Below are positions 3,842 to 28,853 of a stretch of 64,000 nt of DNA, in pieces. Below the pieces are notes generated by a model, which saw only the letters and a list, made by a program, of their open reading frames with translations, was not told the origin of the DNA and made no database searches. The DNA is taken from the NCBI RefSeq assembly GCF_026571515.1, contig NW_026857880.1, positions 496,001-560,000 on the forward strand, written 5' to 3'. The stretch's first letter is position 1. Each line of letters starts with the position of its first letter. This DNA comes from Ruditapes philippinarum. Taxonomy: Eukaryota. A program made the position numbers and the translations under genes.

Positions 3842-6800
3842 TCATCGTTTATCTGTCAAAACTTTAGGAGGATTGGTGTTGCAACTTCCGCTGCATATTA
3901 GGCACCACACTGAAAAACAGAAAATGCATTTAGACATTTTAACAAATCATAAATAAGTTTATTCTTAAACAAAAAAACAGACATTTATCAAACAAGGTGC
4001 AAACTATTATCTCATTTGAGTATATTTGATTAACCAGACGACATACAGTATCTTTTGTCAATGTGCCAAAATTATATCATGTCTGGGGCCTTTTTGTTCA
4101 TTGACATGCTCTTAAAATATCGTTTTTGTTCTGTGTAATTTATTTCATCTTATCTTGTATAATAAATATATTTATTATACTTTGTTCACATGAGAGTGAC
4201 CGATTTATAATTTGATTCATCATTTGTTTTCTTAATAAACCATCATGAGAAAATAATTCATTAATTATCAAGAGAAAATAATGATCCTATTCGAGTCTAA
4301 GTTTTTTGTGAACCAAATTCATTTTTTTTTTGTAAAATTAAACATTAATTGAATATGTCATATAAGTAACAAATTTAAGTAAACAAATGCAATGTAGACA
4401 CAAAGACATTTACCACTCTCTTCCTCAAAAGCAATAGTCTCTCTTTTACTGCGCATTGTGTAGTCTTTCTCAACAAACACCGACTCGTAGTCTTTACAGA
4501 AGGCAGCTATCCGTTCTCCGTACATTACCACTTCTGACGGTTCTACAAACGTCTTTGACGTGCACTTGAATGTCTGCCTGATTTCATAGTCACCATTGTC
4601 CTGAATTTAAGCACAAGGTGTCTATACATTTCATACAAATAATTGATTGATAAAGTTAGATGTTAAAATTAACATTTGTGTAGCAAATAAAATTAAAATA
4701 TTCAATTATATAACATGGTCCCATGTAAAAGGCAAGAATGGTCATTATGATTCCGATTATTTTAATGTTCGAGCTATTTATCACATACCAAACTTAGTAT
4801 GCATACACAATATAGGTCAAATCGATTATATTTAGACAAGAACTGCATCTAAATTTCACAACTTACTCTTTCTGCTTGATAAAGAATATCTGTCAAATAG
4901 TCCATTGAATGTCTAGTTTTCTCTATGTAACAAACGCCCTTCTCAACAAGTTTAATGACACTGTATCCCTAAAATGTAATACTTTGTTTTAAAATCTCAA
5001 AATAAATACTTGCTTTAAATAGAAAGGTTGTTTTGTTTGCTGTTGTTTTTATTTCTAGAGAGAGTTATAGGAACAAAATAATGAGATGGGACTCTTCTGT
5101 TCATTAGAAATAAGGAATGGTACGACGTATATTGAAATATTCTCTAAGGAATTAAATCTAATTGATGAATAGTAATCATTTGGTATGTGAACATACCATA
5201 TATAGTTGCTTATTGATGCAAATATGCAGTATTTAAATTAAAATGTAAATATACCACAGAAAAGTCATGGAACGCAATAGATGGTGTGACTTTCTTGGAT
5301 GTTACTTTGGCGACGGTTGCTATGATCAGTTCTGCTTCCTCGTCAATCATCACATCCTCGTAGGCCCTTACAGCATCTCCAATATGTCCTACCACTCTTC
5401 GATACTGAATAAAGGATGTACATTAGCAGTTATTATTATTTCCATAGGTCACGTCTTTTATTATAATAGGTTAATTTCCGGATGATACAAAAGTCAATGT
5501 TGTATTTAAAAAAAAAGATATACTGGCATGCGAGCAGTTCCCGTACAAAAATCATAGTTACTTAAACATTATTTTTTATTACGATCACTCACCAAAATTT
5601 AAATGTTACACATCAATATTCGGCTCGTAACACAAATCATGGAAATTCCATCATGTTCTAAACATAGAATAACCCTTACTTATGAGGCCTCAAATGGGGT
5701 ACCGAAATTATCCATTATTTTGTATGAAGAGAAGTAGTTCCCGTACATAAAATCTAACCCATTGTAATTATATAAGTTTATTATATCGGACCTATTTTTC
5801 ATTTACAATTGTTGAACAGACCATTATCTAAGAGATAAATAGATGTAATTCAGGAAATAGAGCGTAGACTAAACGCGGGTATCTATTACCCGGTACCGTT
5901 ACCCCAACGCATTCACATGCAATAGCATGCTTGTATGCATGATATTTTACGTATCAAAGCCATAAAATTATTTTATATAGTAATATTGGTCAAAATTCTG
6001 ATAATTAAACAAGTTTTCATCACATTGCCTACTTATCTGTAAACAGGTGGTATTAGTGGAAAACCCTTTAACAAGCCTCACGTGTAAGTATTTTTGCGCA
6101 TGCGCGCAAGGACGGAATCCCCCAGAGAAAACAAGGTCACGTTTTGACGACGCACAGGTGGAAGTGATTTAAAATGAGACTTTTTATACGTACTACCGAA
6201 CTGACACTTAGATTTTGTCTTGTTTATGTATCTGCTTAATTTGAAATGAATTTTTGAAGAATGCAAGTAAAAATCAAGCGTTTAAATGAAAAATACGGGT
6301 ACTGCTTCTGTACGGGAACTGCTCGCATGCCAGTATATATATAAATTATCAAATGTCAAAAATCATTAATTGAACAAAACGCCGCTTTCGATAAAAGTAT
6401 TATGGAATATTGCCTTAATGTATCGTGTAGGGAATCAGCTTTGGACTATTAAACGTTTTTAGACATTCTTTTCGCAATTAATATGATGGTTAAATCGTGA
6501 CTTAAATTCAAGCATTAATGGCACTTTTACTGGTAAGTCTTTGAGTTGCAAAAAATGGATAGTGATACAGATACCAAGAGCTAAACCGTTTCTGACATCA
6601 ATAAATGCTTTCTTCAACAAAATAATCTTAATAACAACAGATTGGATGGTTATTTGAACATTGCAAAATATTTGGAAAATGAACTTACCTCTGGTACTGC
6701 TTCGGTCCTTAAGATAACACAGGCAAGAACAAAAATGATATACCTTGAGTTTTCCTGTGAATACACAAAACGGTTACTGTAACAAAATAGATTTGAAATG

Positions 6801-7636
6801 ACAATGTGAATTTATCGGAAATAAGTTAAGCACACACGACATTTTGCCTCAATTTTGACATAACCACAACCAGAATGTTTAATTTCATTTGGGCAAACTT
6901 GTAAGAACCATCTGTAAAAAAAACCTGCAACAACTGGAACAAGCTCTGCACCACGAATGGCAAGCTTTTACTAAAAATCGCATTAGACGCCTTACTTGTA
7001 GTATGAGGAGAAGGGTTGAGGCTATTATCCGAGCATGTGACGGTTACAAACGTTATTAAAAATTTGACTACATAATGTAATTTTAGATTACGCAATCGTC
7101 AACATTTTCCAACAATAACCACGAGTAAATGTTTTGTAAACGTTCCAACACCATACTTATAAACATTAATATGTTTGGTAAAAAACATCACATTTCCTTA
7201 TGCTGCAATCATTTCATTAAGCATAAACCTAACTTATAGATTTCTTGGTTTATAATCTTGGTATCGCTACTTATCAAATTACTTTTACTTAGCTCAATTA
7301 AGTCGTTATCTCATGACAGTGCTTTTAATCAAAACCAATTTTAAATTTCCGGGGTGTGCTTCACTTATTTCCAGGTGTATATATTTCTGTTAAATGTTCT
7401 TGTAAATATTATGAAATTCAAAACCTGACATGACGCGTATAAAACAAGACCTGTTTCTTATCGTCTGTGAATTTAATACATACGTAAAATGTAGTTTGAA
7501 CTCATTATCTCCAATTAGGATAATGTGGATAATTTAAAAGTATTGCATTTACAAATTTAATAAAGTGATGTTTAATCATGATTTATTTTAAACAATTGAA
7601 GAAGAAAATAAAATTTAAAGAAACTCCACTTACCAT
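3842..7636 (-). CDS. Secreted BRICHOS-domain precursor, paralog 1 (191 aa, 6 exons)
   Basis: Exons 7636-7634 (ATG|GTAAGT), 6754-6689, 5404-5255, 4968-4867, 4600-4414, 3909-3842, all GT-AG with consistent phases. Protein: M-ENSRYIIFVLACVILRTEAVPE (signal-like) ...SIAFHDFSVGYSVIKLVEKGVCYI... GERIAAFCKDYESVFV (BRICHOS HDF, CY and FC hallmarks) ...RSKR / ETIAFEEESVWCLICSGSCNTNPPKVLTDKR*. Confidence 0.88.
5523..6333. mobile_element. MITE with 25-bp TIRs and TA target-site duplication, in intron 2 of BRICHOS paralog 1
   Basis: CTGGCATGCGAGCAGTTCCCGTACA ... TGTACGGGAACTGCTCGCATGCCAG; absent from paralog 2. Confidence 0.88.
6817..7380 (+). mobile_element. Internally deleted Tc1/mariner element
   Basis: Transposase C-terminus NLQQLEQALHHEWQAFTKNRIRRLTCSMRRRVEAIIRACDGYKRY* at ~6921-7059; right TIR ACTTATTTCCAGGTGTA; left TIR damaged. 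Confidence 0.8.
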
Positions 7637-7707
7637 TGCTTTTCTTGTTATTGCTTTATTCTAACAGCAGGAACTTGAATAATGGAGAAAAAAATATGAT
7701 GCGATGT

Positions 7708-7715
7708 TATTTATA
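7708..7715 (-). promoter_or_regulatory. TATA box of BRICHOS paralog 1
   Basis: TATAAATA about 70 nt upstream of the ATG exon, conserved in paralog 2. Confidence 0.55.
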
Positions 7716-10187
7716 GGTTTTCCAAAACCATTCAGTATGATGTTATAGCTACAGTTTTTCAACATGTATTGTTTACAAAATTGCTAAAATATTAGGTTAG
7801 TAATTTAAAATACGTCAAGAGATTCCTATCATCCAAGTGTGAGTAAACAGTCCAACTGAAACCTTCAAATACCTTAGCTTTTACACCCTCCAAGATTGCA
7901 AGATTACACAAATTCTCGAAAGACAAATGTAAACGGGTCCAAAACAAAATCGTGATATAAAAAATAAATTGTTTTTTCAACGTTGCGCTTATGAAATTAC
8001 CCGATGATTAGGACTTCTTCATAGAAGTGTCGTGTGACGAAAATGACCAAATTCAATGTAATTTACTCAATCCTTAGTACTCAAACTTTCCAATCAGTTT
8101 CACAAACTTAAATCACATACTTGATACTACTTTCCTTTCGAAAAATTTGAGAAATAGATGTATCAAAATCTTTTAGAGTTTTAGAGTTCGTTTTATAATG
8201 TAAAGACAAAATGATATCAGAATGGAAACAAAAATATTTTTATCTTATTTATCTTTAAATTATTATAACCATAATTGAAATTTTAGTTTTGGTTATTTTT
8301 GAATAATAATATGCTCTCATTTAATGATATAATTATGTGACTTTCGGGAAGTCTAGACAGTGACATAATTGTCACGTTGGAATTTAATATAGCATCAATG
8401 ATTTTTGTGTCATAAAAAATATAAAAGAGTTTTTTCTACTTGTAGTCAGCACCACGAAGCAAATAATATTTTAGAAAGGCCTACTGCCCTTAACAAGAAC
8501 ATGTAACAACACAAAAAAGGTTAGAAAGTCACAATTTACAGGAAACCATAATTCTGATAATCCAGACAAAGAGTAACTAGACTAGGCTTAAATTTTGGAC
8601 AAGGATGTTTGGATATTTTTTTACGTTTCAATAAAATAACATATGAAAACAGAACAATACGGTTGAACGTAACGGCTATCTCTTTATCAAAAGGAAAAAA
8701 AAAACAACTTTAAGTTAGTCAGTTTAAAACGGGTTCGTTTGAATACCTTAAATTGTTAAATAGGGTGAACACATTTTTTTCTCTTCTAATGAATGCAAAT
8801 TACAAAATGAAATGGGTGTTTGAAAGAAAATTGTAAAAGAAATTAAAATTAATATGGAGATATAAATGCCACAATATCACTTGCTGTTTACCAATACAGC
8901 ATAATTTATTTTCTTTATGAATTATTTAGAACCCGTTTGTTTTCTTGCTGCAAGCAGCTTATCAATTTATATTGAAAAGCAAAAGAAAAACATTTTTAGG
9001 AAAGTGACTAGCGAAAAAAAAAATTCGGTTGTTTACTTGTATATGTGTGATAAATTGTTCTTTGAATTGTAAAAATAAAGATTACCTTTGGTTCAGCCTT
9101 TGTTGTGGAAAGAAAAGCAAACACAGCTACGATTGTTATCTTCTTCTGAAAATCAATAAGAATGAAACTTAATAATCGATTGTTTATCCTTATTTACTTA
9201 GTTATACTGCTTATAATTTAAAATACATTTATGTACATATCATTTGATTGATTAATCTATCATGATTCTAGATAGCATTTTCTTCTATTTTTTCAATTAA
9301 TTGTTACAACAAAGGTAGAAAACTTTTGATTACTGCAGGATAATATTAAAACAGCACGCCTCCATAAGAACAAAAAATCTCTCATTGTGCTAATTCTTCA
9401 AAGCTCACTTTATATACATACAAACGCTTTAAAAACGTTCATTTTAACGTTTTGCTTCAAAAACAGACAGAGCGATTTTTCACAATCGGGTTACATTTTA
9501 TCATATGAAGTGATTCTTTCATCCAGGTTACCTTGTGATGGCAAAGGACACTATCTGGATCAATGATCCGGAACGCAAGTCATTTTGATGTTTGCAGACC
9601 TCTCTTTCACACGTACATATGTTAAAAACATAATTTACTTTTTTATTTATACCGGTTTCCACGTTAGAAACACAGTAGATTGCAAAGAAATGCAGGTTTT
9701 ATGGACTTTTTTGTCAAATTTCTTTCTTGAACTATAAGGTCTAGTAGTGTGTTGGTTTATGTTATCAGTAATTATCAGTTTTAAGAATGATCTTTGTTAA
9801 TTAAGAAGTTGAAATCTAATATATGAATTTTGATAATGACAATGACAATGAGTTTATTAGTAATATAAGGCCTTCAGCCCAAAATACATTCAGAATTTTA
9901 ATTTAACAAAGAGTGAGATATAAATATATATAATATACATAGTTATGAGTATATTTACAATGAATTAGTTTAATGGTAATTGAATATTTAAGTTGAAATA
10001 AAGGTAATATTAATTAAATATATAATGTACAAATGCCAATATGATTAATATCAGTGTTGAAGAGGTAACTATTAATTTATATATAATATTTAAACATAAA
10101 GGTAATTGGTTACATAGAGAAACGGTCGTTTCAACAAATTCATGGCACATAAATAAATTAAAAACATTACAATACATGTATATATGT

Positions 10188-10874
10188 TTAAATGTGTTCA
10201 GTTAATTGAAGTTTTCTTAAACTATTTGCTTCATAGATAAATTTTGCCAGTTTTCTAATATTGTCTTTCGCTGTATCTGACATTATAGTATTAAAGCGTT
10301 CATTACTGTTTAGAATCACATTCCAATTACAAAAAATTAAGTGTTTGTGTCTAAGGTCGTTGTACAGCTGACAGTCAATCAAAAAATGCACTTCATTTTC
10401 CACAACATACGCATTACGTTTAACACAAAATGAACAAAATCTAAATTCTCTCTCAATATTTAAGTGCCTTCCTGTTTCAGTTTTCAAGTCATGGCCACTG
10501 CATCTAAAATTTGCTAATGCGCGTTTATATTTATAAGGCATACTCAGTGACAAATAACATTCGTCAGTAATAGATGTTTTATAAATTCTGTAACTAATTG
10601 CTTTAGGCGATGAATTAATGTCAGACATTATCTCTTGTCTACAGCAGTCTGAGACTCGTGTCCTAAATACTTGCATGAATGTATCAACATTTCCGACTCC
10701 GTTCGCTGTCCATGCGTAACCAAGGCCTAATTGAAATAACATGCGTTTAACATGAGTTGCCCATGTGATTCGTCCTTGTTCATCTAAGTTTCTAAGCATA
10801 ATATAGCATTGTCTTGGTAACCGATATTGTGGCATTTCCGTTAATTTCAGCCAGTACTTAACACATTTAGACAT
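10188..10874 (-). pseudogene. LINE ORF2, C-terminal zinc-knuckle part
   Basis: ANFRCSGHDLKTETGR...FCSFC...ENEVHFLIDC; a second frameshift lies near 10906. Confidence 0.85.
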
Positions 10875-10905
10875 ATATGTTACACTAATTGGAAGGCGTC
10901 CGCAT

Positions 10906-12126
10906 TCAGTAAGGGCGAAGAAACTTGCAATTAACGTTTTGATTTAAACATGCTATCCTTTTGCAAAATGATATATGCACATTTTCGATCTGTCGAGATG
11001 TGTTATATCCCCAAATCTCTGATGAGTAAGTCAAAATGGGTTTTACCATAGCATCGAATAGTTTGAAAGCATCATTAACACTAAAATAACCAAAATGTTT
11101 CTGATAAGCATAAATAACATTAACAGCCTTGGTCGCCTGTATGGCTAGTACATATTTCGTTTTAGTCCATGAGAGTTTCGGGGTAAAGTATGCTCCTAGG
11201 TATTTGTAACAATTGACAACTTCTATTTCATTTTCATTATACATCAATTGCTCATATTGTCTTAGTGGACCGCCATTTCTGAAAACGATTATCTTAGATT
11301 TATCAAGGTTTATACACATCCCAGTTTCAGCACAATAATTACTTATTTCATTTATTTGTCTTTGGAGATTTATAGCCGTGTGTGCAATACTGGAGACATC
11401 ATCAGCAAATAATAAACAATACATCTCTCCTGTATGTTGTGAGATAGTGATTCCATTTTGACATTTATTATTTAAGTATTTCACAAGGTCATTTATGTAT
11501 AGGTTAAAAATGATTGATGACGTCACACAACCTTGTTTTGTTCCTTTGGCGCACTGAAAGAAATCAGTCAGCCCGTTCATCGTAGGTCCTGATACTTTTA
11601 CACATGACCGAAGTTGAGAATAAATATTTCGGAATAACGTTAGAAATCTGCCTTCAGGGGATATTCCCTTCCTTTCTAAACTTTCCCATATTTTGAAATG
11701 TACACAATTGTCAAAGGCCTTAAGAAAGTCAACGTAAAACACATATAATCGTCCTCTTGATTTACTAATATATTTTTGTACTATAGATTGAAGATTAAAA
11801 ATGTTATCAATAGTTGAATAATTACTCCTAAAACCAGCTTGGCATTCATCTATAATGTTATTCAATTCTGCCCACTTGGTCAAACGATTTGCGAGGATTT
11901 TCATAAAAATTTTACTCAAGCTATTTCCTACAGAAATTGCCCTGTAATTATTCGGATCGGATTTATTTCCTTTCTTGTGTACTGGGGTAACAATGCTTTC
12001 TGCCCAGGTAGGTGGGAAATGTCCCGTATGTAGTATATTGTTGAATAATTTATTCAAGTATGGTATTGTTAAATATATAGTACCTTTGAACATTCTATGC
12101 ATATTCCATCCACTCCTGTAGCGCAA
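10906..12126 (-). pseudogene. LINE ORF2, reverse transcriptase part
   Basis: Motifs PVHKKG, NYRAIS, QAGFR, FYVDFLKAFD, GTKQG, LLFADD and YKYLG. Confidence 0.93.
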
Positions 12127-13451
12127 TTATTTTTCAAGGAATTAACACTTATCATGATTTCGTCGTCTGTGACGTCACAATCAAGATCTGTGTCATCTAT
12201 TCTATCATAAAGACTATTGAATATATCTTGATTATTTAAAACTTGATTGTTTTCAGAAAATAGCTCGCTTAAGTAGGAAATGTTATGTTGTGTTCGTCTA
12301 AATTTACGCAAACTGCTATATTTCAGTTGTTTCATCTTTGCACATTCCGAGTCCCACCAACGCGGTTGTTCATGATGTGCCTCCAGACTTCTGTTTTTAC
12401 CTTTATATACTTTTAAAAGCATGTTTTTACCGGCGATTTTAAATAGGTCTATAAAAGTTGTACATGTGTTGTAGATATTTTCCTCTTGAATAATATCATT
12501 ATAAAAGGTTTCAAATAATGGTGTGAATTTTTGTATAAATGTATCTCTGAGCGACTCTTTCCATTTATACGTTTGATGTTCATAAAGGTTCGGAAATGAG
12601 TGAAATTCCGTTGAATTCACGTTTACAGTATCAAGTAGAATTTCACAGGTAACCGGAAAATGATCTGATAAATCAAAGTCTTCAACACTAAAGTCTTGTA
12701 TACGATCAAATATGTCGGTCGACGCAATAAAATAGTCAACAACACTCAATCCTCCATTTGCTGTACATGTAAAGTTCCCGGTTGTATCTCTAAATAGACG
12801 TCCATTAAGAATATGAATCCCTAATGTACAACACATTTCAATAAGCGATATACCGTAACGGTTGCTTTTTTCATCGCGATTTTTTCTGTTCATATCAAAT
12901 ATGTCACCGGGATAATCTGTGCATGAGTTAAATACGTGATCAATGTCGTCATCTATTATGATATCTTCTAGGTTTCCGGTTCGAGCATTTAAGTCCCCAG
13001 CTACAATGAGGGACACATCACCAAGGTTTGAGATAATACATGTCAGTTTTTGAGAAAGGATATCTATACCGTTTTCCGACGTGTCTTGGTAAAGAGGTGA
13101 ATTCTCCGGTGCAACGTAGCAGAAAAATAACACAATACTCTTTTCTAATTTTGCAATATGCTTATCAATATAAAGGACAATACATTCTTTGAATTCCGGG
13201 TATATACGTTTAACAATGGCATTATTACATAATTCATTCCTTATAAAGACTGATACTCCACCTGAGCCTCGATAACATTTTGATGTTCTTGGGCAATCAT
13301 AATTTGTGAAGCCAGGTAATAAATTATCATAGTTATCATGCGTTGTTTGCCAAGTTTCACAAATGCAGACGACATCATATTTATTGCAAAATGTAATAAA
13401 TTCGTTGTGTTTGTTGTATTTACGTAATCCTTGAATATTTAATGAACACAA
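12069..13451 (-). pseudogene. LINE ORF2, apurinic endonuclease part
   Basis: Motifs LNIQGL, CICETW, GGVSVF, AGDLNARTG, SVVDYF and SDHFPV; frameshifted relative to the RT. Confidence 0.9.
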
Positions 13452-13496
13452 TTTTAAACTGTCATATTTACACGATTTTGGGCTTTGGCCGAATTC

Positions 13497-13832
13497 CTAT
13501 TTTTTAACAGAAACGGGACACTTTTTGTCTTTGCAATATGTGTAAATTTCATTATCAACAATCAGTTTATCATACTTAAAATATGCTGATTTGCCAGAGT
13601 CCAGACATTCTTTAAAAAATGGATATAATTCGGATCTTGCTAATGATATTCTATGGGGAAGGTCTTCTGATATACGAAACGGCAAGTCAGTTGACTTTCT
13701 TTTTGAGCGAAAAGCTGTGACAATGGCTTTTCGGTCAGCATAGTGTGCGAATCTAGCAAAAACCATTCTACTTCCTGATTTACGATATAGGTCATCAAAT
13801 TTTATATCTGAATCATCTACGCCATGACTGTC
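13497..13832 (-). pseudogene. LINE ORF1 C-terminal fragment
   Basis: ...IKFDDLYR..RMVFARFAHYADRKAIV...FRISEDLP...AYFKYDKLIVD, typical of an ORF1 RRM/CTD region. Confidence 0.7.
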
Positions 13833-16769
13833 TTTGATAAGAATATAGAAAGAACGTTATGTGTTTTCCGAAGTTTTGAAATAAGGAGCCTACAATTACA
13901 AGTAAAACTATTTACAAACTATGAATATCAAACTAAAGTTATCAACTATTTACGTACCATGCTTGTGTTTCGTCGGTTTTATTCTGAATTGCTTTCGATT
14001 CTTCGATGAATGTGATGACACAGCAACAAGGCAAATATAAAAACAGAGCGCGCTTCCACTGTATTTATACGATACCGTTTAATCACATGCACATGCTGGT
14101 TTGTTTCGCGTGTGTAACGCGTGTCCAAGTGACCTTCAATGCAGATTCACTGCGCAAAAAATGTATCATCAAAGTACAAATGTACTTCCTTTAGGGGGCA
14201 AAGTATGTATGTCAAGAGTGCAATAGCAAAAACTAGTACTGCAGTACTTGTATGATTTTGAAAATAACAGTAAATAGACACTTGAATGACGCGATATATG
14301 AAACTGTTTTAATATATATTTTATAATATTTGAATAAATTCATTTGATGATCAATAAAGTCAGAAGGGAGAAAATATACTTCTGAAACTTAAAGGTTCTC
14401 CAAGAAGTAGACAAAACAGAGACACCCTATATATAGGTATATGTTCAGTGTTCTATAGAAACGTTTGACGAAAAATATCATTATTTCAAATGTTTTATAT
14501 GTAAATTATGTATCGGCAATTGAAGACTTGAAGAGACTTAAGTTTACATGTCAGTTGAGCAAATTAGTTACGATTTCATGGTAAATGACTATACAAATAA
14601 TTTTATGGAAAGAATTTTCAAAAAGTTTGGACAGCGTATTGTATTTGATGCTTTTGCTACAAGCAGACGTATTGTAGTCCCTTACACAAAAACAATCCCC
14701 AAATAGAGTTGTCGTTCGTCCTCTTCAAAAGGATCGATAACAAGAATTTTGTTAAAACGAACAAAACATGTATTTGAACGTAGTAGATTTTAAGGAATAC
14801 AATCATATTGACGAAGGGACATAATATTTACATTGTCATAACATGTGTTGTTGTGTACAAATAATAAGTTTAATAAGTTTAATTATTATAATTGGAATTA
14901 TTGTATTGCCAACTTTCGAAGATAGTAATCGCCGCAAAAATGTTAACAAAATGCATAACTAACATTTTCTTAAAAGTAATATTAATATATTACAATACTA
15001 TTTTACTTACGCCGATAAACGGCCCGTCACAACATCACTTTCTGGTCAACGTTTTTCAGGTTGACACATCTGGCGTGTGATTAACGTGACACTGTGTCGA
15101 ACGCATAACTAGCGTGCGTCTTACTATTTGACAACGCCAGAAGAGTATTCCCTTTATATAATCCTGATTTACTCTAACACTTTGGTCGTCTTCGTCGGGA
15201 TCTTCTTCTCTGCGTGTGAATTCCCTCGATGTGTTCCGCTGTGTTTAAGTACAGTACATCTACTTGATACTTGGCTATAGCAAGCATATATAGCAAACTA
15301 AATCTTTCAGTATTTTCCATAGTAGGTGTTCTTTATGGGAGCCCAAAATCAAATGATTCTTGTTTTTAAATATGCATGGACGTTAGGAAAACGGTCAAAT
15401 GACGCTCATTGAACGCAAAAAGGACGTTCGTTGCACTTAAGTCACACGCTTTGTGCGCTTGAGGACCTTGCAGCTGTCAGTGAGTCGTTCACTGCAAAGA
15501 AACGATTAGTAACAATCAAATTTTTTTTATTGTTTTTAATATGTATATGGCGCATATTTGAATACATATTTTATGTCTGTTGAGAAATCAGTCTCACGTT
15601 TTATTATATAAATTTTCGTTTCATTCTAGATCTCGGATATTATTAAGTAACAGATATGAAAAGCTATACTTTGACTATTACCTTCTCTTAATTTATTTTA
15701 TTTATTGCCCTGCTTTATGCGGAAACTTGTTCCAAGGTTTCTATCATTAAGATAAGATACATGTTACATCGTTGTACATCGTTGTCAGAGACATAAGAGA
15801 CGGCCTTTAATGTATAAATCAAATCAAACACAGACTAATAAATATTATTATTTTTAATTTTTTCTTCATACTACTATTTCTAAATTCATTTCTATTGTCT
15901 AGATTTGTCGGACATTCATACAGTAATTGATTCGTTAATTACCTAGTACGAATTATGGGAGTTTGTTTGATTTATACGGGCTAGACGATAGCAGTATTCA
16001 TATTTCATTGACTAACTTCGATCATTTTTTACCAAATATGGCCATAGGGATACAAAGTCGTTTAAATCTGGAATCATTTGCTGAATCATTAGTCAACATT
16101 ATGAAAAAAAAAATGAAAAAAATAAGTGTAGGCAATTTCATAATTAGATTGGCACCTTAAATAATAAAACAAACAGATATAAAAGTAGCCCTTACTAAAT
16201 TGACAAGATGACTAGCAATAGATACTTAGACGTAAAAGAAAGGAATAAACAAATGAAACAGCTAAAGAGGGGCGTGTGTTTAAAAGTTTTTTTATTAGCG
16301 TCTTATTAACTTTTCTATCACTTGTTACAATTTTTGTTGCCCTACTTTCTGTAGGCACTGATAGTGTTTATCGAGATAAATGAATGGTTAAACAAAAGCA
16401 ACTTAAAGCATCTTTGTGTTCTTATATGACATTAGTGGGACATTGTTAGGCAGATTAAAAACATATTGCCAACCACGTAAATGACATTGTTTAATGTAAA
16501 ACAGTCGAAACTAATGGAGGTGAACTAATATATTAAAGACGGACATACTAGTAAACTCTTAATATTATTACTTATTATAATATGATTTAATTATTGCAGC
16601 ATGTGTCGTGGCAACAATACAGCTGAATATACTTTCTGTTACCATGTAAGATGAATTTCGTTATGTTCTGTTTTAATACAATTATAATACTTGTAACATG
16701 ATAAATAACAAAACAACTTTTAAGGTTTCGCTTTATTTATTTCACTGCAAGATCGATACACGTCAATTT

Positions 16770-17167: not shown

Positions 17168-17471
17168 ACACAATATTTCTTCTTTGGACCAAAACATAAC
17201 TGTCATGGACAAGTTACCATAGGTCTGTCTATTGGAGATGTGCACACACATTTCTTATATATTTGTCTTCAATGACTTTTCAACAAACATATTTAACAAT
17301 TTCGAGTTTGTTGTGTTATTGCTTGGTAACAAGCTGACAAAAATGCATGTAAAAAACACTATTTAGCTATTTAATTACGATAAAATATTGCATGATATTG
17401 ATAATGAAGATAGAAAGGTAACATTGTTATTTTTTCTAATTATTGATTATCTGTCGGCTGTCGGTGTATGT

Positions 17472-20400
17472 TTATTTCAAAGTTTTTTCAGGAGGAGGAT
17501 TGTCGTTGCAACTTCCTTTGCAAATGAAGCACCACACTAAAAAGCAATTATACAATATATTAAGACATTTGCAAAAATCATAAATAAATTCATCCATAAC
17601 AAAATAAGAGATATTAAACGACGCCAGGTACAAAAGGAGTATATTTGATAACAATGACAAAATAAATTATCTTTCTTCCATATGCGAAAATTATATCAAT
17701 ATTCATGTATGAAATGTCTGTATATATATTTCAGGATCTTCTTTTAAATTTCTTGAAACATAATATATTGATTAAATTTAAAAGCACGTATCATTTTAGA
17801 TCATAAGATATATGGATTGGAAAACATTCTTTTACAATAACATGCTCTGAAAGATAACTTTTACGTTCTGTGGAATTTATTTTGCCTTATTACGCGCGGT
17901 CTTTCGATGCATAATAAATATAAATGTACATGTTCTTTTTTCTCATGAGAGTGACCGGTTTATAGTTTGCTTTATCATTTTCTCTCTTTATTAAGTATCA
18001 AGAGAAAAGTAATAAGCTGTTTTAAGTGAACCAAAGTCATGTCCTAACTTTAAACATTAATTGAATTTGTCATATAAGTGACAAATCTAAGTAAACAAAT
18101 ACAATGTAGACAAAAAGATACATACAACTCTGTTCTTCAAACGCTTGGGTTGCTCTCTTACTACGCATTGTGTAGTCTTTCTCAACAAACACCGACTCGT
18201 AATCTTTACAGAAGGCAGCTATCCGTTCTCCGTACATTTCCACCTCTGACGGTTCTACAAACGTCTTTGACGTGCACTTGAATGTCTGCCTGATTTCATA
18301 GTCACCATTGTCCTGAATTAAAGCACAAGGTGTTGATACAAAAACATTTCATACAAATAATTGATTGATAAAGTTAGAAGTTGAAATTACTATTTGTTTA
18401 GCAAATAAATCTACAATATTCATTTGGATAACCTGGCCCGATATAAAAGGCAAGTATGGTCATCATTGTTCCGATCATGTTTTGATGTTCGAAAAATTTT
18501 ACCTCATAACAAACTTATTTATGCATTTACAATCAAAGTCAACTTGATTATATTCAGACAAAGACTGCAACTTACTCTTTCTGCTTGGTAAAGAATATCC
18601 TTCAAGTATTCCATTGAATGCCTAGTTTTCTCTATGTAACAAACGCCTTTCTCAACAAGTTTAATGACACTGTATCCCTAAAATGTAATACTTTGTTTTA
18701 AATCTCAAAATAAATACTTGATTTAAATAGAAAGGTTGTTTTGTTTGCTGTTGTTTTTATTTCTAGAGAGAGTTATAGGAACAAAATAATGAGATGGGAC
18801 TCTTCTGTTCATTAGAAATAACGAATGGTACGACATATTTTGAATAAATATTCTCTAAGGAATTTAATCTAATAGATTATGAAGTAATTTTTTGGTATGT
18901 GAACATACCATATATAGTTGCTTATTGAAGCAAATATGCAACATTTAAATTAACATGTAAACATACCACAGAAAAGTCATGGAACGCAATAGATGGCGTG
19001 ACTTTCTTGGATGTAACCTTGGCGACGGTTGCTATTATAAGTTCGTCTTCCTCGTCAATCATCACATCCTCGTAGGCCCTTATAGCATCTCCAAAGTGTC
19101 CTACCACTCTTCGATACTGAAAGAAGTATAAATATTAGCAGCTATTATCGTTTCCATAAGTCACGTCTTTTATTTTAAGAGGTTGATTTCCGGATGATAC
19201 AAAAGTACCTTTTAAAAAAAAAAACGCCGCTTTTGATTAATACATTATCATGAAATATTGCCTTAATTCATCTTGTAGTTAATCAGCTTTGGACTATTCA
19301 ATATCTAAAGAATTTCTCTTTGCAGTATAAATGCATTGTGAAATCATGAATTTAAATGTAAACATGGATGCCACTTTACTGATAAGTTTCAGTGTTGTAT
19401 AAATTTGATTCTGATAAAGATACCAATGCCTAAACCGTTTCTAACATCATTAAAGTTGTTCTGAAACAAAAAAAATCCTGTTAAGAACAGATTAGATGAT
19501 TATCTGAACATTACAAAATATTTGGAAAATGAACTCACCTCTGGTACTGCTTCGATCCTTAAGATAACACAGACAAGAACAAAAATGATATATCTTGAGT
19601 TTTCCTGTGAATATAACAAAGAATTACTTAACAAAATAAATTTGAAATGACAATGTGAATTTTTTTGCAACTATACGCCTGGAAATAAGTAAACCCCCCG
19701 GCATTTTGCATCAATTTTGACATGACGACAACTGAATTTTTAAATTTTATTTGGGCAATGGTACGAACCACCTGTAGTCAACTTGCAACGACTGGAACAA
19801 GCTCTGCACCAAGAATGGTAAAATTTACCTCATAATCGCATTAGACGCATTACTGGTAGTATGACGGTTACACACGTTATTTACAATTTGGCTACATAAT
19901 GTCATTAAAGATTACATCGTCGTCATCATCGTCAACATTTACCCCCCAAAAAAACGTTCAGTACATGTTTTGTAAACGTTCCACCACCATACTTATAAAC
20001 ACTTACATTTCTGGTAAAATAACACAACATATTTGCTTATGATTCAATAATTTGGTTATGAATAAACTTAACTAATAAATGTCCTGGTTTATAACTTTGG
20101 TATCACTACTTATCAAATTACTATTTCTTAGCTCAATTAAGTCGCCATCTCCTGATAGTGCTGTCAATCAAAACCAATTTTAAATTTCCGGGGTGTGCTT
20201 AACTTATTTCCAGGTGTATATATTTATGTTAAATGTTCTTGTAAATATCATGAAGTTCGAAACTTGACATGATGCTTATAAAATAAGACTTAATTATTTC
20301 ATATTGTCTGTGAATTTAATACATATGTAAAATGAAGTTTGAACTCATTTATCTACAATTAGGATGATTTATTTGTTAGTAATTAACATCATATAGTAAT

Positions 20401-20676
20401 TCATTCATAATCAATGAGCACCTTTAGTGTCAATTTAAACTCTTGTGACCCTTTATCAAGTGATTTCTTTTGCAAATACAAGAACGATATTTATGTTACT
20501 ATTAAACTCACAAAACAAATCTTGTGTAAACTGTGTACATCTTTTGTTTTCTTTTCAAACCATCGCATATAATGTGGATAATTTAAAAGTATTGCATACA
20601 GTTATGTTTAAATAAATCATGATTTATTTTAAACAATTAAGACTAAAATAAAATTTGTAGAAATTCCACTTACCAT
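17472..20676 (-). CDS. Secreted BRICHOS-domain precursor, paralog 2 (190 aa, 6 exons)
   Basis: Exons 20676-20674, 19604-19539, 19116-18967, 18677-18576, 18312-18126, 17536-17472. Exons 1-5 have the same sizes as in paralog 1. Ends RSKR / ATQAFEEQSLWCFICKGSCNDNPPPEKTLK*. Confidence 0.88.
19674..20218 (+). mobile_element. Internally deleted Tc1/mariner element (counterpart in duplication copy B)
   Basis: TIRs TACGCCTGGAAATAAGT / ACTTATTTCCAGGTGTA flanked by TA; remnant NLQRLEQALHQEW*NLPHNRIRRITGSM. Confidence 0.82.
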
Positions 20677-20746
20677 TGCTTGTCTTGTAATTGCTTTATT
20701 CTAACAGCAGGAACTTGAATAATGAAGAAAAAATATGATGCGATGT

Positions 20747-20754
20747 TATTTATA
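20747..20754 (-). promoter_or_regulatory. TATA box of BRICHOS paralog 2
   Basis: TATAAATA about 70 nt upstream of the ATG exon. Confidence 0.55.
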
Positions 20755-23099
20755 GGTTTTCCAAAACCATTCAGTATGTTGTTATAATGTTATGATCTAT
20801 GCCCATATAATCAGCTACAGTTTTTCTACAGGTGTTGTTTACAAAATTGCTAACATATTTGGTTAGTAATTTAATATAGGTCAAGAGATTCCTATCATCC
20901 AAGTGTGAGTAAACAGTCCAACTGAAATCCTGAAATACCTTTGCTTTAACACCCTCCCAGATTGCAAGAAAAACAAATGTAAACAGATCCAAAACAAAAA
21001 TCGTATAATAAACAATAAAATGTTTTGTCAAATTTGTGGTTATGATATTACCCCATGATTATGTCTTTTTCATAGAAGTGTCGAGTGACCAGAATAACCA
21101 AATTCATTGTAATGTACCTAAGCCTTAGTACTCAAACTTTCCAATCAGTTTCCCAACCTTTAATCACATACTTTATGCTACTTTCCTTTCGAATAATTTG
21201 AGAAATAGATATATCAAAAACGTTTAGAATTTTAGACTTCGTATTATAATGTAAAGACAAAATGATTTCAGAATTTTATTTCATTTATTTTCTACTTATT
21301 ATTACTATAATTGAAATTTTAGTTTTGGTTATTTGTTGATAATGTGTTTTCTTTTTTATATGCTCTCATTATATGATATAATTATGCAACTTCAGGGAAG
21401 TGACATATTTGTCACGTTACAATTTAATAACCTATTAAATATAGCACCAATGCCTTTTGTGTCATAAAAATAATAAATTTATTATGAAATAGTATCTTCT
21501 AATTGTACGAGGTCAGCACCACGAAGCAAATAATATTTTTCATAGGCCTACTGCCCTTAACAAGTTCTCGTAACAATAGAAAAAAGGTTAGAAAAATCAC
21601 AATTCTGTAACTTGTACTGTTCATTCTTCCGCCATTTACAGGAAACCAAGATTCTGATAATCCAGATATAGGGTAACTAGACTTTAATTTTGGACAAGGA
21701 TGTTTGTATATTTGTTTACGTTTCAATAAAATAACATATGAATACAGAACAATACGGTTGAACGTAAACGGCTATCTCTTTATCAAAAGGAAAAAAAAAA
21801 CACTTTAAGTCAGTCAGTTTAAAACGGGTTCGTTTGAATACTTTAAATTGTTAAATGGGATAAACACATTTTTCTCTCCTAATGATTAGTTTACTGTGAA
21901 TGTTTTGCCTATATTATATTTCACGCTGTTATAATGAAAATAGCAGAAATAGACAAGAACATCTTTAATCTAATCCATTCATCTAATATGTGTATTGATA
22001 TATTCACTTCTTTGTTTAACATTGCAAATAGATACTACAACTGCAATTTGACTAACATTTTGTGCAAAAGGTAAATAATTTTTTTTTAAAGCGCCTTTAA
22101 TTGAAAATTTTAGAGTAAATAATAAATTTTTAGATATTTGGCGGTCATCATGGACACCATCTTGAATTTTTCTGTCAGTACCCTAAGTTGAAGTTATCAG
22201 ATTTATAATTCTACAAATAATAAATTTTGCAAAATATCGCTAGGGGACTATTCATGCATATAGAAATCCACTCCTATATATATATGCACTGTACTTTAAG
22301 TTCAAAACTTGAGTCACTGTGTGGATGATCAAGTTCACGATCTATTTTGTCTCTATTTTCGTCAGTATCAACTACAAAATCTGACAGTATGATCATCCTT
22401 ATTTTTATTATTTTCCTTGTTTTTGTCATGTTTAAACATTTAAGCTTTAACGCCCCTAAATTCCAATTAACTGTCGAGTCATGGTGTCCGTGAATGTAGG
22501 TATTAACATTTTCAGTAGGCGTTAAGTTTTTTGTTGTAGATGTAAAAGTCGGTCATACTTAATTTTGAATATTTTTCGAGTGTTTGGTGATCATTGATTC
22601 CAATGAGTTTTGGTATTGGCGAGTTAAAATTGCGTTAACATGTTCCATGGGTCTTGATATGACAAGATATATTACACTTTGTTATATCACTGCAAAACGC
22701 ATCTACGAGTTTATCTCCGTTATTTTGTTTTATATCATTTCTCTCAAGACATCTCGCCTTTAAATAGTTTTTATACCGTGTTATGTTTGTGTAAATTATA
22801 AGCAGTCCATTTGTAAAAGGCACCAAATAAATGGAAATGGTGTTGATTACATTCGTTTAATTGCTCATACAAATTAGAAGTGATTGTAAACACATCTTTG
22901 GAGACTGTGGAGGCTTAATTGTTTAAGTCTTGTATAAAATTGGCATGAATAAAATCAGAGGTGAGGTACTGTACAGGTAAATTACTCTCTGGTTATAAGT
23001 TTGTTGATAGTCTGGGAACAAGAGACTGTTGGTTTTAAATATGCAATGATCAATCTTGTCAGTCCTCCTAAATGTAAGCATGCTTTATTTATAAGCAAT

Positions 23100-23305
23100 A
23101 TGAGCCGAGTCACGACAAAACCAACGTTATGTGCATCCGCGCAGTCTGATCAGGATCCATGCTGTTCGCTTACAAACCCTATTACAAGAAAGGAAACTGA
23201 TAGCGAACAGCATGGATCCTGATCAGACTGCGCGGATGCGCAGGCTGGTCTGGATCCATGCTGGTCGCAAACGCATAACGTTGGTTTTGTCGTGACGCAG
23301 CTCAT
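23100..23305. mobile_element. Palindromic MITE
   Basis: ATGAGCCG..CACGACAAAACCAAC ... GTTGGTTTTGTCGTGACGCAGCTCAT with an internal CAGGATCCATGCTGTTCGC inverted pair; second copy at 38489. Confidence 0.85.
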
Positions 23306-24286
23306 ATGTTCATGAGAGTAAGCTATCGAAATTTCAGTATTCTTTCAGTTGCTCTATATCCTTGGGAGTAATCTTGTAGGTAACTTACAGGATGTTGATA
23401 CTGCTATAATACTTTTGTTTTGTGTATTTTGTTTCTTCTATTCTTTTGTATTGTGTGAACTATTGTAAATTGTAATACTTTTTGTACACTGTTGTAAATT
23501 GTTATTCTTCCGTATTTTGCATACTGTTTTATGTTGTATTTATATATAAAAAAATGTAAACTGTTATAAGTTGTATTTTTTTTTATTTTGTAAGCTATGC
23601 GAACATTAAACCTGATAAAATCCCTTGCATAGTAAAATCGTCCGCTAATGTTTGATACTGTATATTATTCTAAATACGTATTAAAAATGCAGAGGGGACA
23701 TTTTTTATACGCCTTGTGCAAAAATATATTGACAATTAAAGACAGACGGCAAGTAATTATTTACATCTTTATTTCGGTCAAAATATAAGCGGAAAGAAAT
23801 GCAATTTTATATACTTATTTACTGTTATGTCCCGGAAGCACTTTAAATATGCCTCAATTGTTACCTCTTACCATAACAAATAACATGATTGTTTTATATT
23901 AAGAGCAAAAAGCTATGCAAGTATTTGGTAGAAGTTATCTGTAAACAACATAAGTGCAATGCATTTTATTTTTCTTTGAAGGCAAATGAAAAATATAAAG
24001 ACTTAAATAAGTCTTTCATAAACGTTTAATGTTTGGCACTGGAAGACATAAAAAGCACTCGGTTGCATTTGTTCCATATATTTATACCGCACGAATACCG
24101 GGATATGAAGTTAATTTAATGAAAATAAGGTGAAAACAAAAAGCTTACGGGCGGAAAACAGATGTTTGTTTATGACTAGTCTCCTTTGAAATCATATACA
24201 TATCACGACAGCAGAAATACACCATTTCTGACATTTGCATGTTTACAGTTTCTAGGAAAAGGTGTTCACTTTAGTCAATGCATTAT

Positions 24287-27200
24287 CTAATTCCTATCGT
24301 CTGATGGTTGTGATAGGTCTGTTGGTCGTGAGTTACAGTTTCCAATACAAAACCCACAGTTCACTGTTATAAAGGAGAAACAAATCAGTGTAACATGTAT
24401 CTACTAGATTCAACAAAATAACAAATATTCATATATCTTCTTACTTTAATTCATTATCTTAGTAAATAGGTACTCCACTAAGGCTGTCTGAAATGACGTG
24501 ACTGGAAATACTTTGACGTCATGATATTTTGTACCATTTAATGAACGTCTGAACCAATAACTTATGTTATAAGGCTTTTTGATCTCAGTGCGGCTCATTA
24601 TGCAAGAAAATCCGATATAAATAAGATTAAAATCTAAAATATGCGAGTTCACATATAACAATTAGTTAAGAGAGAAGTGTAAGAGAACAAATCATGTTTG
24701 AAATAATAAGAAATCTCAGAATTAAAACGTTTCTGCAAATAAAGATAGGTTATTAAATTTCTCCACTTACTTGCAGCTACAGACATTGTCCTGATTGACC
24801 GCTTTCTTTTACTTAGGAATTTTCGTGTCGAGAACACAACGTCGTCATCTTTACAGAATTCAGCAATCTTTTCTCCAAAACGAGATATGTCTGATGTCGG
24901 GACAATCTCATTTGAGATACAGGTAAATGTTTGTGTAATGTCGTAGAATCCATCTCTCTGAAATGATAATGTACGTATCTCACCATTAAATTTACTCGCA
25001 TCTAAACATTACATTCACTCGCATCTAAACATTACATTTACACGTATCTCACCATTACATTTACTCGTATATGTACATTACATTTACACGCATATGTACA
25101 TTACATTTACTCGCATATGTACATTACATTTACTCGCATATGTACATTACATTTACTCGCATATGTACATTACATTTACTCGCATATGTACATTACATTT
25201 ACTCGCATATGTACATTACATTTACTCGCATAGGAACATTACTTTAACGCGTATCTCATCTTCACACTTACATTAATAAATATTATCCTCCAATTGTTCT
25301 ATGTTCTGTCGAGAAACATGTTTTAATCCACAACATAATTATGTTCTTTACAGTCACCATCACTGTATACATATAAACAGTTTTTCCTAATTTTTATTTG
25401 TTTGGGTCGTCAGACCAAACAAATAATGGTAGCGAAATTTCAGAGTCTAATGTTGTTAATTGCAAATGCCGAAAGTAGTCCACTTTTTTTGAAGCGGTTA
25501 CTTCCCTTTTGTATGTACACTAAAGCCGAAAAATTCAGGGGAGATCACTGCGTAAAGATGGTCAAAGACAGGCGCATCAATTTTCAAGCAATGTAATTCC
25601 CGAATGGTCGAAGATTTCTAATATTGTTTTATTGTATTTTCTGATCGAAAATAACTAAATACAAAGCGGACATTCAATCTCTGACACAGAAGTTTACGAC
25701 AAACCTAACAACAAGTAGTTCTCAAAACAGCTTAAAACTAGCGATTTAAAAGAAAGAAATATTTTATTTTGTTACAAGTATCCAACAAATTACAACGCAT
25801 TTAAAGTTAAACAATAGCGTTGGCTTATAGAATTGTCAATAAATGCACAATTACAAATTACGCGGATGAATATGATTTTATCAATGAAAATACTATTTAT
25901 TACCGAATACTACACAAACCGAGTAGTGGAATTTATAGGTTCTACATGTCGGACTGTTTGGGCGAGAGGATTTTCGCTAAAATATTTACTTCAATTTTAA
26001 ACAACAGGTTTACCCTGAACAAAATACCTCGAAATTAATAAGGATTACAAACCCGAAATGCAATGGAAGTTCTAAATTTAGAATGACTTGATATTATTCA
26101 GATTTTGTGTGTAACTTCTCCGTGGTTCAGTGGTAACGCGCTCGCTTAGTGAGTGAGAGGTCTGGAGTTCGAATCCCAGTCGAGGAAACTTTTTTTTTTG
26201 TTAAATTCTTTTTTAAGTGTTTTTGTTAAGGAAGTAGCCATGATATGCAAGGATAAAGTGTGGCTGTCGTAAAAAATGAACATAAATGATTTTTTGATGC
26301 AACTCTAGTTATGCAGAATTCCGTATGTATCAAACTCTGGTGCCTTGCAAAATGAACTATAATACATAAAAATAAACCTATACAGGAAAATGCATACAGA
26401 TATACAGTTGATTTAGATTGCAAAGATCAGAAAATACCACAGAACTTGCAGCCCTTTGATTCTTTATAAATATAAATGCTTATAGTAAGCTCCAGGATTA
26501 TTTACATCTGTGTTAAACAACAGTTAAAGTCGTTACAAGCCCTAATTTAGAATAATATGGGTTTCTTCAGCCCGTTCACATATAAATTCACCGTGGCTGA
26601 AGGGTTTTCGGGCTCGCTTAGGAAGCGAGAGGTCTGGAGTTCAAATCCCAGTAAAGGTAACTCATTTTTTTCAAATTGTTAAAGTCAAATAAACATTGGA
26701 TTGAATATCAGTGTTGCAATTAGTCTTATAGCCAATTTAGTACAATTAAAACGCTGGAAAGCATTGATGGCACTATACATATAATCTCACAACTTGCACC
26801 TTTCTTACATTCTGAGACCCAAACAAATTCAGCGCCTTCTGTGCTTTGATTATATAATGTTTTCGTTCTCTCGTTTAGCTCAATAGGGAAATTAATAAAT
26901 TTGTAAACAAGGGGATGCTGGTTCGATCCTCGGGCAAGTCGGAATTTCTCCATGGCAAATGATCTTAGACATTGAGCCTAATGGTCATTTGTTTCTGACA
27001 TCTGGTCCTATTTAAGTAAGCTTCTTGCAGAACAATTACCGATTTGTTATCCGGGAAAGCCAGTAAGGTGGACTGAGATATGACCAAAACTATGTAAAAA
27101 TTAGAGTAAAAACAACAAAAAACCTTTGAGTCAAGTGAATTGATGTTGAATGAGACGCAAATTGTATCCCATATTTTCTTATAATGTATAGAATAGTAAA

Positions 27201-28853
27201 AAATGAAATATATTTACTTTCATTGATGTATTATACATATCTATCATTTCACCAAGTGTATGTCGTGTATGGAAGATATTACATCTTTGGCTTTTGTCAT
27301 TCCTGATGGCGGTGTAATTCTGTTAAAAGAATTCAGAAAGTAAACACATGTTTTCATGAAAATCGTATAATTATATCATCCGATATAATATATTGTTTAT
27401 AGTGGTGTTACAGTGTTTCAGTATTGTGGATAATACCTATTTTACAAGAGAATTGCCTTTTAATAGTGTTGGTATAAAAAAAGGCATACCTGTTATTATT
27501 TTTTTTAACAAAATTCGAAAATAAATTTGATATTTCTAATGTACTGTATTATATTTTGGAACGTTTTTTTTCTTTCAGTTTGCCCTTAACGGTCCTGGGT
27601 TCAAATACCGCGAAAGATTTTGGTTTCTTTATTGTTAGGAAACTATCCAGCAAGCTTACTGTGGTTCGGAATAAAGCACCTGATGTCATCCTTCACCAGT
27701 TAAAAGGTCGACCTTATGACCTTTACAGTGTTTCTGTAAATTAAAACCCAACAACACAAACATATTCTTCCATTGCATAATGGTGGGCAATGGTATATAT
27801 TACAAAATAATAATTAAATTATCCTTAACCAAACCATTAGTAAAACTCACTCGATTAGAGCAATAGTGAATGTAAAGACAAGTATGTAAAAGCGTTCGTG
27901 AATATAATTAAATTGACTGATTTTACGTATTATTTTGAAAAACATACCGAGTGAAAGTCATGCAAATTGATGGTTGACATAATTATATCTGACAGAGAAT
28001 TTATTCTTATCAGCGCATATTGTTCTTGTTTGTCAAACACAGCGTCTTCAACAGCAATCACTTCTCCTCCATAATGAGACTCGAAGCTGTGAAACTGAAG
28101 ATAAGATAAGTATTGAAATGCAAAAGCAAATTTTGACAAGGAGCAAACCCTAACAAGAGGTATAAACGGTGTAAATTGCAGATTCGGTTTGATGAAGTCT
28201 GTTCATAAGATGTACTCAAATAAAACATCAAGGTTGGTGATAAGGTGCAGCCTTGTTTGAGCATAGTGATATCATCGAACCGAATGAATCAGCTACTCAT
28301 TTCTGAGTCACTAGCTTAAAGGTCGTGATAGATAAATGTATAACAGAAGATATACTCGTATAGGTTTAATTCATTCTCTATTATATTGTCATGTTTGAAT
28401 AGTGCCTTGTCTAAATAGTGCTTAAGACAATGTTTTTTAGAAAAAATAGGCCTTACCTCTGGGAATGCTCTTGCTGTCACCGTGAGAATGGCAAAAAGAA
28501 ATACTTTCGTAGAGTCCTGAAATTTATTTGAAGCCAATTTTAAGTATAACAAAATAATTAGGTAACCGTCTATAGCCAGCAATTGAAAGAATTGAAAAGA
28601 AAGATTAATAAGATTAATGATTAAAAAAATAACAACACTTATTTATGTAGTTTTTATGACAAAATGATATTTAGACCTTAAAATTAAATGTGTACCCTTA
28701 TGGCATGTATAAATCTATGTCAGTTACTTAATTTATCGGTTTTAAGCACTTTCAAATACAATTATCTTATAGTTTGTTTGAAAACTGTTTGAAATATGAT
28801 TAAATTTAGCAATAAACATTCAATGAACAAATCAAATATGCACAGCTTACCAT
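24287..28853 (-). CDS. Secreted BRICHOS-domain precursor, divergent paralog 3 (191 aa, 6 exons)
   Basis: Exons 28853-28851, 28516-28457 (DSTKVFLFAILTVTARAFPE), 28094-27948 (...TINLHDFHS), 27319-27218 (NYTAIRNDKSQRCNIF...), 24957-24771 (...TFTC...FGEKIAEFCKDD...KRKR), 24363-24287. Same intron phases and the same 102-nt and 187-nt exons as paralogs 1 and 2. Peptide SIRTMSVAAMNCGFCIGNCNSRPTDLSQPSDDRN*. Confidence 0.86.
24970..25275. repeat. 23-bp minisatellite ACATTACATTTACTCGCATATGT
   Basis: About 13 copies, degenerate at the edges, next to the exon-5 acceptor of BRICHOS paralog 3. Confidence 0.92.
26116..26199 (+). pseudogene. tRNA-Pro-like pseudogene or SINE head (second copy ~26590-26670)
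   Basis: A-box TGGTTCAGTGG, CTCGC-TTAG(T/G)-..G(T/C)GAG arm, B-box GTTCGAATCC and a T-run; acceptor and T stems are imperfect. Confidence 0.55.
26870..27120 (+). mobile_element. Degenerate tRNA-derived SINE (similar fragments near 27590, 42560 minus, 52800, 54837, 56200, 61600, 63700)
   Basis: TAGCTCAATAGG A-box, GGTTCGATCC B-box, AAAC-rich tail. Confidence 0.45.

Follow-up and report, generated by a model that had tools for sequence, protein, structure and literature searches.

The window analysed here, a 64,000-nucleotide stretch of the Ruditapes philippinarum genome (positions 496001–560000 of contig C6367; assembly of 1.4 Gb, G+C ~31%), carries three intact minus-strand genes that encode small BRICHOS-domain proteins with a predicted signal peptide and a short, cysteine-containing C-terminal tail. 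Splice sites read on the DNA give each gene six coding exons, and products of 191, 190 and 191 amino acids (aa) for genes 1, 2 and 3, respectively. All 15 introns have GT–AG ends, and exon lengths and phases correspond among the three genes. The intron preceding the tail exon is in phase 1 in each of them, even though exon 5 of gene 3 is ~35% identical to its counterparts in genes 1 and 2. A first-pass annotation of this DNA had proposed three intact six-exon genes forming a hidden cluster. The gene models hold: all exons were found on the minus strand and the coding models are complete. The cluster is indeed invisible to a bacterial-style open reading frame track, but RefSeq already annotates all three loci (LOC132751350, LOC132751354 and LOC132751353), each under the name 'uncharacterized protein'. 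Since the RefSeq models match genes 1 and 2, the cluster is hidden only from the bacterial-style list of reading frames.

Gene 1 (LOC132751350; coding span 3842..7636, 191 aa; all exons given here are on the minus strand) has a model identical to RefSeq P0022 (XP_060597495.1). The coding part of its exon 1 is the ATG only (7634..7636), with a GTAAGT donor in a context that is kept in gene 2. Exon 2 (6689..6754) encodes a signal-peptide-like hydrophobic segment ending in A-V-P-E, exon 3 (5255..5404) the N-terminal strands through the H-D-F at which BRICHOS starts, and exon 4 (4867..4968) the core of BRICHOS, its first conserved Cys lying in G-V-C-Y-I. Exon 5 (4414..4600) supplies the C-terminal half of BRICHOS, including an extra Cys in F-K-C and the conserved Cys in A-F-C, followed by the R-S-K-R site and the first 9 tail residues, and exon 6 (3842..3909) supplies the tail core W-C-L-I-C-S-G-S-C-N and the stop codon. 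Exon 2 was first placed at 9145–9086, an assignment replaced by 6754–6689, which is homologous to the gene 2 exon and to those of relatives. The discarded segment (9086–9145, minus strand) is an exon-like run of 60 bases with AG/GT flanks encoding a signal-peptide-like 20-mer that resembles exon 2 of gene 3; it lies 1.4 kb upstream of the gene 1 ATG, and may represent an alternative first coding exon or an orphan one.

Gene 2 (LOC132751354; coding span 17472..20676, 190 aa) likewise has a model identical to its RefSeq protein, P0017 (XP_060597500.1). Its exons encode the ATG (20674..20676), the signal-peptide-like segment (19539..19604), a third segment placed by splice sites and by a read joint to exon 4 (18967..19116), the BRICHOS core (18576..18677), the C-terminal half of BRICHOS with R-S-K-R and the start of the tail (18126..18312), and the tail core W-C-F-I-C-K-G-S-C-N with the stop codon (17472..17536). 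Gene 3 (LOC132751353; coding span 24287..28853, 191 aa including exon 4) begins with an ATG exon (28851..28853; donor GTAAGC) and a signal-peptide-like exon ending in A-F-P-E (28457..28516). Exon 3 (27948..28094) was placed by splice sites on the DNA, and exon 4 (27218..27319) encodes the BRICHOS core (R-C-N-I-F) in 34 codons, the same number as in the other two genes. Exon 5 (24771..24957) carries the C-terminal half of BRICHOS, K-R-K-R and the start of the tail, and exon 6 (24287..24363) the tail core N-C-G-F-C-I-G-N-C-N and the stop codon. Exon 4 is skipped in the annotated isoform X2 of LOC132751353 (RefSeq P0001), which otherwise consists of the gene 3 exons and so lacks the core of BRICHOS together with its first conserved Cys.

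Public sequencing runs were aligned to the gene 2 region (17400–23399). Contigs of run X1 carry three gene 2 joints, 17536>18126, 18676>18966 and 19603>20673 (exons 6–5, 4–3 and 2–1), all with CT..AC ends, equivalent to minus-strand GT..AG. In the same run, four loose ends (18312, 18575; 19118, 19539) match exon ends at the 5–4 and 3–2 junctions. Depth is 124.8 at the exon 5/6 joint (17536>18126) and 105–303 over the gene 2 exons, as against 11–20 in introns 2 and 5. Gene 2 is transcribed and spliced as modelled, at all five exon joints, and the spliced transcript expected to join exon 5 to the cysteine exon is seen for this gene in the X1 contigs; the RefSeq models may rest on the same data as X1. 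Two further runs, X22 and X23, were set aside as expression evidence. Both are labelled RNA-Seq and cover exons and introns evenly at 1–5x, and at GATC sites ~98% of their aligned reads switch to unrelated sequence. Such behaviour resembles that of Hi-C-type DNA proximity-ligation libraries, here deposited as RNA, and the two runs are for that reason uninformative on expression.

The gathering cut-off of the Pfam BRICHOS family, PF04089, is 25 bits. The products of gene 1 (P0022, 26.1 bits) and gene 2 (P0017, 30.0 bits) lie above it, bearing out the first-pass assignment of the domain, as do their relatives P0018 (34.3 bits), P0010 (33.4 bits), P0021 (33.1 bits), P0019 (32.4 bits), P0008 (32.2 bits), P0023 (31.9 bits), P0025 and P0007 (30.6 bits each), P0020, the Mercenaria protein nearest to gene 3 (29.7 bits), P0005 (28.0 bits) and P0003 (27.0 bits). 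P0009 sits at the cut-off line (25.4 bits) and P0016 just below it (23.1 bits). The domain is divided among exons 3 to 5, which explains why PF04089 matched neither the single exons nor, in a six-frame scan of the whole genome, anything in the window; isoform P0001, lacking exon 4, is also without a Pfam match. Gene 3 was taken through the database searches exon by exon, and its joined protein was compared by script with proteins already fetched. The joined protein is 50% identical to Mercenaria P0020 over 157 aa (local comparison) and scores 175.8 bits against a hidden Markov model built from the family alignment. H-D (residues 69–70 of P0017), C86 and C142, BRICHOS residues that are invariant in 13–16 family sequences, are present in genes 1–3, and G..I..F-C is a further invariant BRICHOS pattern.

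An AlphaFold2 model of P0017 (mean predicted local distance difference test score, pLDDT, 83.4; predicted template modelling score, pTM, 0.76) aligns with the BRICHOS domain of proSP-C (2yad_A) over 67 of 77 residues (r.m.s.d., root mean square deviation, 3.5; Z 4.0; rank 50). A profile search of Protein Data Bank (PDB) sequences gave a weak match to the Bri2 BRICHOS domain (8rnu_A, E 0.42) over the region H-D-F ... C-Y. The fold fits BRICHOS without discriminating, so that membership rests on Pfam and the conserved residues; judged by these, the domain in the clam proteins is BRICHOS.

Sequence features predict a signal-peptide-like N terminus in the genes, as first proposed. The hydrophobic stretch of P0017 covers residues 5–17, and the Ala at −1 and the Pro at +2 of the predicted signal cut are invariant throughout the family. 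At the other end of the proteins, the tails of genes 1, 2 and 3 are 31, 30 and 34 residues long with net charges of −2, −1 and 0; their sequences, lengths of 30–34 aa, approximate charges, odd Cys count and the place of the first Cys, tail position 12, are all as the first-pass annotation had them. Its shared R-x-K-R furin site survives in part. Genes 1 and 2 have R-S-K-R, gene 3 has K-R-K-R, and the family as a whole keeps the dibasic K/R-R alone: relatives have R-N-R-R, K-A-K-R, L-T-K-R or V-T-K-R, with the dibasic pair in all and the cut-site Arg invariant. Between 19 and 56 residues follow the dibasic site across the family, and 10 of the 12 distinct tails have an 11-residue spacer that places the first Cys at tail position 12. 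The proposed C-x2-C-x-G-x-C-N motif is a feature of Ruditapes, whereas the wider family keeps just the three Cys, its core being C-x2-C-x3-4-C, in which the residues that separate the first two Cys are hydrophobic. Three members, P0021, P0020 and P0010, end in Gly or Gly-Lys-Arg, resembling amidation signals. A protein-database search with the tail sequence returned no usable match.

The cysteines of the tail are matched by those of the chaperone part. The latter contains three Cys, two canonical and one in F-x-C, which is residue 120 in P0017, and the tail contains three, or five in P0007. P0010 is without the extra chaperone Cys (leaving two) and has a tail with four. In total, 17 of 18 full-length proteins have an even number of Cys. 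This parity suggests that the odd tail Cys is paired inside the precursor, in which case the plain release of three-cysteine peptides originally envisaged may be too simple: the tail may be disulfide-tethered to the chaperone part, not simply released. In the P0017 model the tail core forms two short strands, residues 169–171 and 175–178, with a pLDDT of 83.

The genes belong to a larger family. A profile built from the three exon 5 peptides matched ten proteins in an exhaustive HMMER search, and nothing outside the clam family; word-based searches added more. Exon-5-like matches occur at at least 12 places in the R. philippinarum genome, some of which may be haplotigs. Contig C6367 carries five same-strand tandem genes, those for P0021 and P0023, which precede the window on the contig (LOC132751374 and LOC132751352, within C6367:464000–487999; tail cores A-C-N-V-C-I-G-I-C-G and W-C-F-I-C-G-G-D-C-N-A) and then genes 1, 2 and 3. 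Elsewhere in the genome are family copies P0018 (contig C8071), P0025 (C4746) and P0010 (C11887), a gene-1-like piece (C12018) and two gene-3-like genes (C7590). A broken copy at C1955:7000–16999, whose exon 5 contains a stop codon and a deletion and whose exon 4 is 3.7 kb away, is a probable pseudogene. In Mercenaria mercenaria a single chromosome holds at least seven family loci, and the locus numbers of several run consecutively. Beyond these two clams no named species matched, the other matches being the transcript cluster P0007 and metagenome fragments.

A maximum-likelihood tree of 16 proteins resolves three lineages common to Ruditapes and Mercenaria (support 82/75, 100/99 and 99/98) and indicates a recent expansion of the gene-1/2 lineage in Ruditapes. 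The tree left out the fragments P0002, P0004, P0006 and P0009, the near-duplicates P0011 and P0014, isoform P0001 and the genes on contig C7590. The predicted precursor layout is conserved across the three lineages. The tail itself changes fast. Between genes 1 and 2, nonsynonymous and synonymous divergence (dN and dS) are 0.023 and 0.184 in the chaperone part; in the first 24 tail codons dN is 0.204, ~9x that of the chaperone part, with a high dS. Positive selection cannot be claimed for the tail, where dN/dS is <1; intron 5 is also unusually diverged (68% identity between the two genes versus 78–93% in the other introns). Gene conversion in the 5′ part, or a separate history of the 3′ end, accounts for the tail divergence no less well than selection.

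We consider it probable that the three genes are tandem paralogues within a venerid-clam family of ~190-aa BRICHOS secretory proproteins that are self-chaperoned and convertase-cut and whose tail is disulfide-tethered. The layout would run from a cleavable signal peptide, with its predicted cut after the invariant Ala and before x-Pro-Glu, through ~40 residues of beta strands and the BRICHOS domain to the invariant dibasic site, beyond which come an 11-residue acidic or neutral spacer, the hydrophobic C-x2-C-x3-4-C core and a variable end. By analogy with proSP-C, Bri2 and the annelid arenicin-type precursors, BRICHOS would shield the beta-prone hydrophobic tail of its own chain in the secretory pathway, and a proprotein convertase would then cut after the dibasic site, as in established BRICHOS proproteins. 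Cys counts suggest that the third chaperone Cys pairs with one tail Cys while the other two tail Cys pair with each other. Even after cleavage, a disulfide would thereby keep the tail attached to the chaperone part, to be let go once that bond was reduced or exchanged. Our best guess at its role is a secreted defence or signalling peptide, because the family has expanded in tandem, its tail changes fast and some members have ends of the amidation type.

Several observations weigh against this account. The strict R-x-K-R site is confined to genes 1 and 2, several relatives having K-R alone. Tail net charge across the family, from −4 to +1, is acidic to neutral, unlike that of most defence peptides. 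The parity rule turns on a single informative switch, that in P0010, and is broken by P0025, in which the basic site has lost one residue and has an additional Cys next to it, so that this member may be decaying. The tail is of low confidence in the gene-3-lineage protein P0020 (pLDDT 38–52), and a predicted complex of the chaperone part and the tail as separate chains scored 0.09, a value that decides neither way. The fold comparison does not single out BRICHOS, since LolA and ependymin-type (EPDR1) half-barrel chains outscore 2yad_A (Z 5.2–5.5), and a Foldseek search of the P0017 model against the PDB returned nothing at E ≤ 0.001. The splicing evidence comes from one run and from gene 2 alone, the exon 5/6 joint has 24 letters on its shorter side, and the true RNA run X24 shows no gene 2 expression.

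Known BRICHOS proteins supply points of comparison for both the layout and the proposed processing. The vertebrate proteins proSP-C and Bri2/ITM2B share the Pfam BRICHOS domain, the conserved Asp and the Cys pair with the clam proteins, which differ from them in having a signal peptide in place of a membrane anchor, in being much smaller, and in adding an N-terminal three-strand segment and the extra Cys. Bri2 is cut by a furin-type convertase, freeing a short C-terminal peptide. Gastrokine-type proteins are like the clam family in size (~180 aa), in their signal peptide and in a single BRICHOS domain that fills most of the protein; gastrokines, for their part, are not known to have a conserved dibasic site with a Cys core behind it.

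The likeness to gastrokines underlies the strongest alternative, which we hold to be less probable yet worth serious consideration. In this case the tail would be an integral C-terminal part of a small secreted gastrokine-like BRICHOS protein that acts whole, not a cargo; it would be held by a disulfide and by beta-strand pairing, with the dibasic site unused or yielding a two-chain form. Cys parity between chaperone part and tail, the fixed 11-residue spacer, the strands modelled at pLDDT 83 in the P0017 tail core and the non-cationic tails would all be expected of such a protein. It accounts poorly for a dibasic site that is invariant within an otherwise variable region, for the terminal Gly or Gly-Lys-Arg of P0021, P0020 and P0010, which are like the amidation signals of processed peptides, and for a tail dN ~9x that of the chaperone part, and the low tail confidence in P0020 also speaks against it.

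A bolder version of the tethered-cargo account, which we think unlikely, would have the dedicated BRICHOS Cys hold the cargo covalently while the C-x2-C of the cargo serves as a thiol-disulfide switch that frees or dimerises the peptide after cleavage. If true, the family would be a redox-gated chaperone–cargo system of molluscs, and the small, non-cationic peptides with three cysteines that it delivers would form a new class.

The order of parts in the clam proteins (hydrophobic N terminus, BRICHOS, basic site, Cys-containing C-terminal peptide) is the same as that of the annelid BRICHOS antimicrobial precursors (PMC9756803, PMC11767717). Reviews within the literature searched report BRICHOS-related antimicrobial precursors just from annelids, namely polychaetes and an echiuran, one review giving polychaetes only (PMC9756803, PMC11767717). 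The searchable literature, outside whose coverage subscription journals lie, contains no bivalve BRICHOS peptide precursor, and the locus names appear in no paper; the suggestion that the family may be undescribed stands to that extent. Arenicin, alvinellacin, capitellacin, nicomicin, HfBRI and AmBRI-44a all come from precursors with the same secretory layout and a C-terminal peptide behind a basic site, and in them, as in the clam family, the cargo varies while the chaperone is conserved. The clam family differs in belonging to Veneridae bivalves and in its tails, which at −4 to +1 are not cationic and which, in all members but one, have three or five Cys matched by the extra chaperone Cys, whereas the annelid peptides have paired Cys. 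That the clam genes are mollusc counterparts of these precursors, their tail a membrane-active antibiotic like arenicin or capitellacin, would fit the tandem expansion and the fast-evolving tail. We nevertheless find it improbable, given the tail charge, the odd Cys count and an exhaustive exon 5 profile search that matched nothing beyond the clam family. As it lacks the cationic, paired-Cys feature, we do not file the clam family as an arenicin-type antimicrobial precursor; it would instead represent a variant of the BRICHOS proprotein with a predicted processed C-terminal peptide.

Least credible of all is that the Cys core is a Zn or Cu site and that the tail would bind or carry metal, the extra chaperone Cys perhaps serving as fourth ligand: the three closely spaced Cys, the Gly kept in most Ruditapes members and the further conserved Cys in the chaperone part would suit such a site, but the protein is predicted to be secreted, where cysteines are usually oxidised, the spacing before the third Cys is x3 or x4, Gly is absent in several Mercenaria members, and there are five or four Cys elsewhere. 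The tail pattern C-x2-C-x-G-x-C resembles the DnaJ zinc motif C-x2-C-x-G-x-G; that motif comes in repeated units, whereas the clam tail is a single unit with Cys, not Gly, at the last position and with the internal Gly sometimes absent.

The window contains other features around the three genes. A degenerate non-LTR (long terminal repeat) retrotransposon lies between genes 1 and 2 (10188–13766, minus strand), its reading frames split over several frames and matching the endonuclease/exonuclease/phosphatase (47.1 bits) and reverse transcriptase (108.6 bits) domains. At 23130–23310, a short inverted repeat has ~4000-fold cover in X22 and X23 and very high cover in X1, with many opposite-strand joints; the element is present in very many copies, highly transcribed, or both. 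Within gene 3, intron 4 holds a 23-bp minisatellite (24984–25246; 11.5 copies, 92% match) that ends 27 bases upstream of exon 5. Finally, a fourth tail-like motif, C-L-L-C-S-G-Q-S-C, stands behind a CAG acceptor at ~28990–29033 (minus strand), ~160 bases upstream of the gene 3 ATG, with no nearby stop and no BRICHOS exons upstream. It is either the relic last exon of a lost copy or a chance occurrence, ~0.2 such motifs being expected per window.

Among natural anti-amyloid chaperone domains BRICHOS is the one studied best, and the annelid cargo peptides are antibiotic leads. If the tethered-proprotein reading is right, the mollusc family widens the range of BRICHOS cargo to peptides that are short, non-basic and odd in Cys number, with a compensating Cys in the chaperone, and it would offer a natural test case for how BRICHOS holds and releases its client. 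For the clams themselves, it amounts to a lineage-restricted, tandemly expanding family of putatively secreted proteins in two major aquaculture species.

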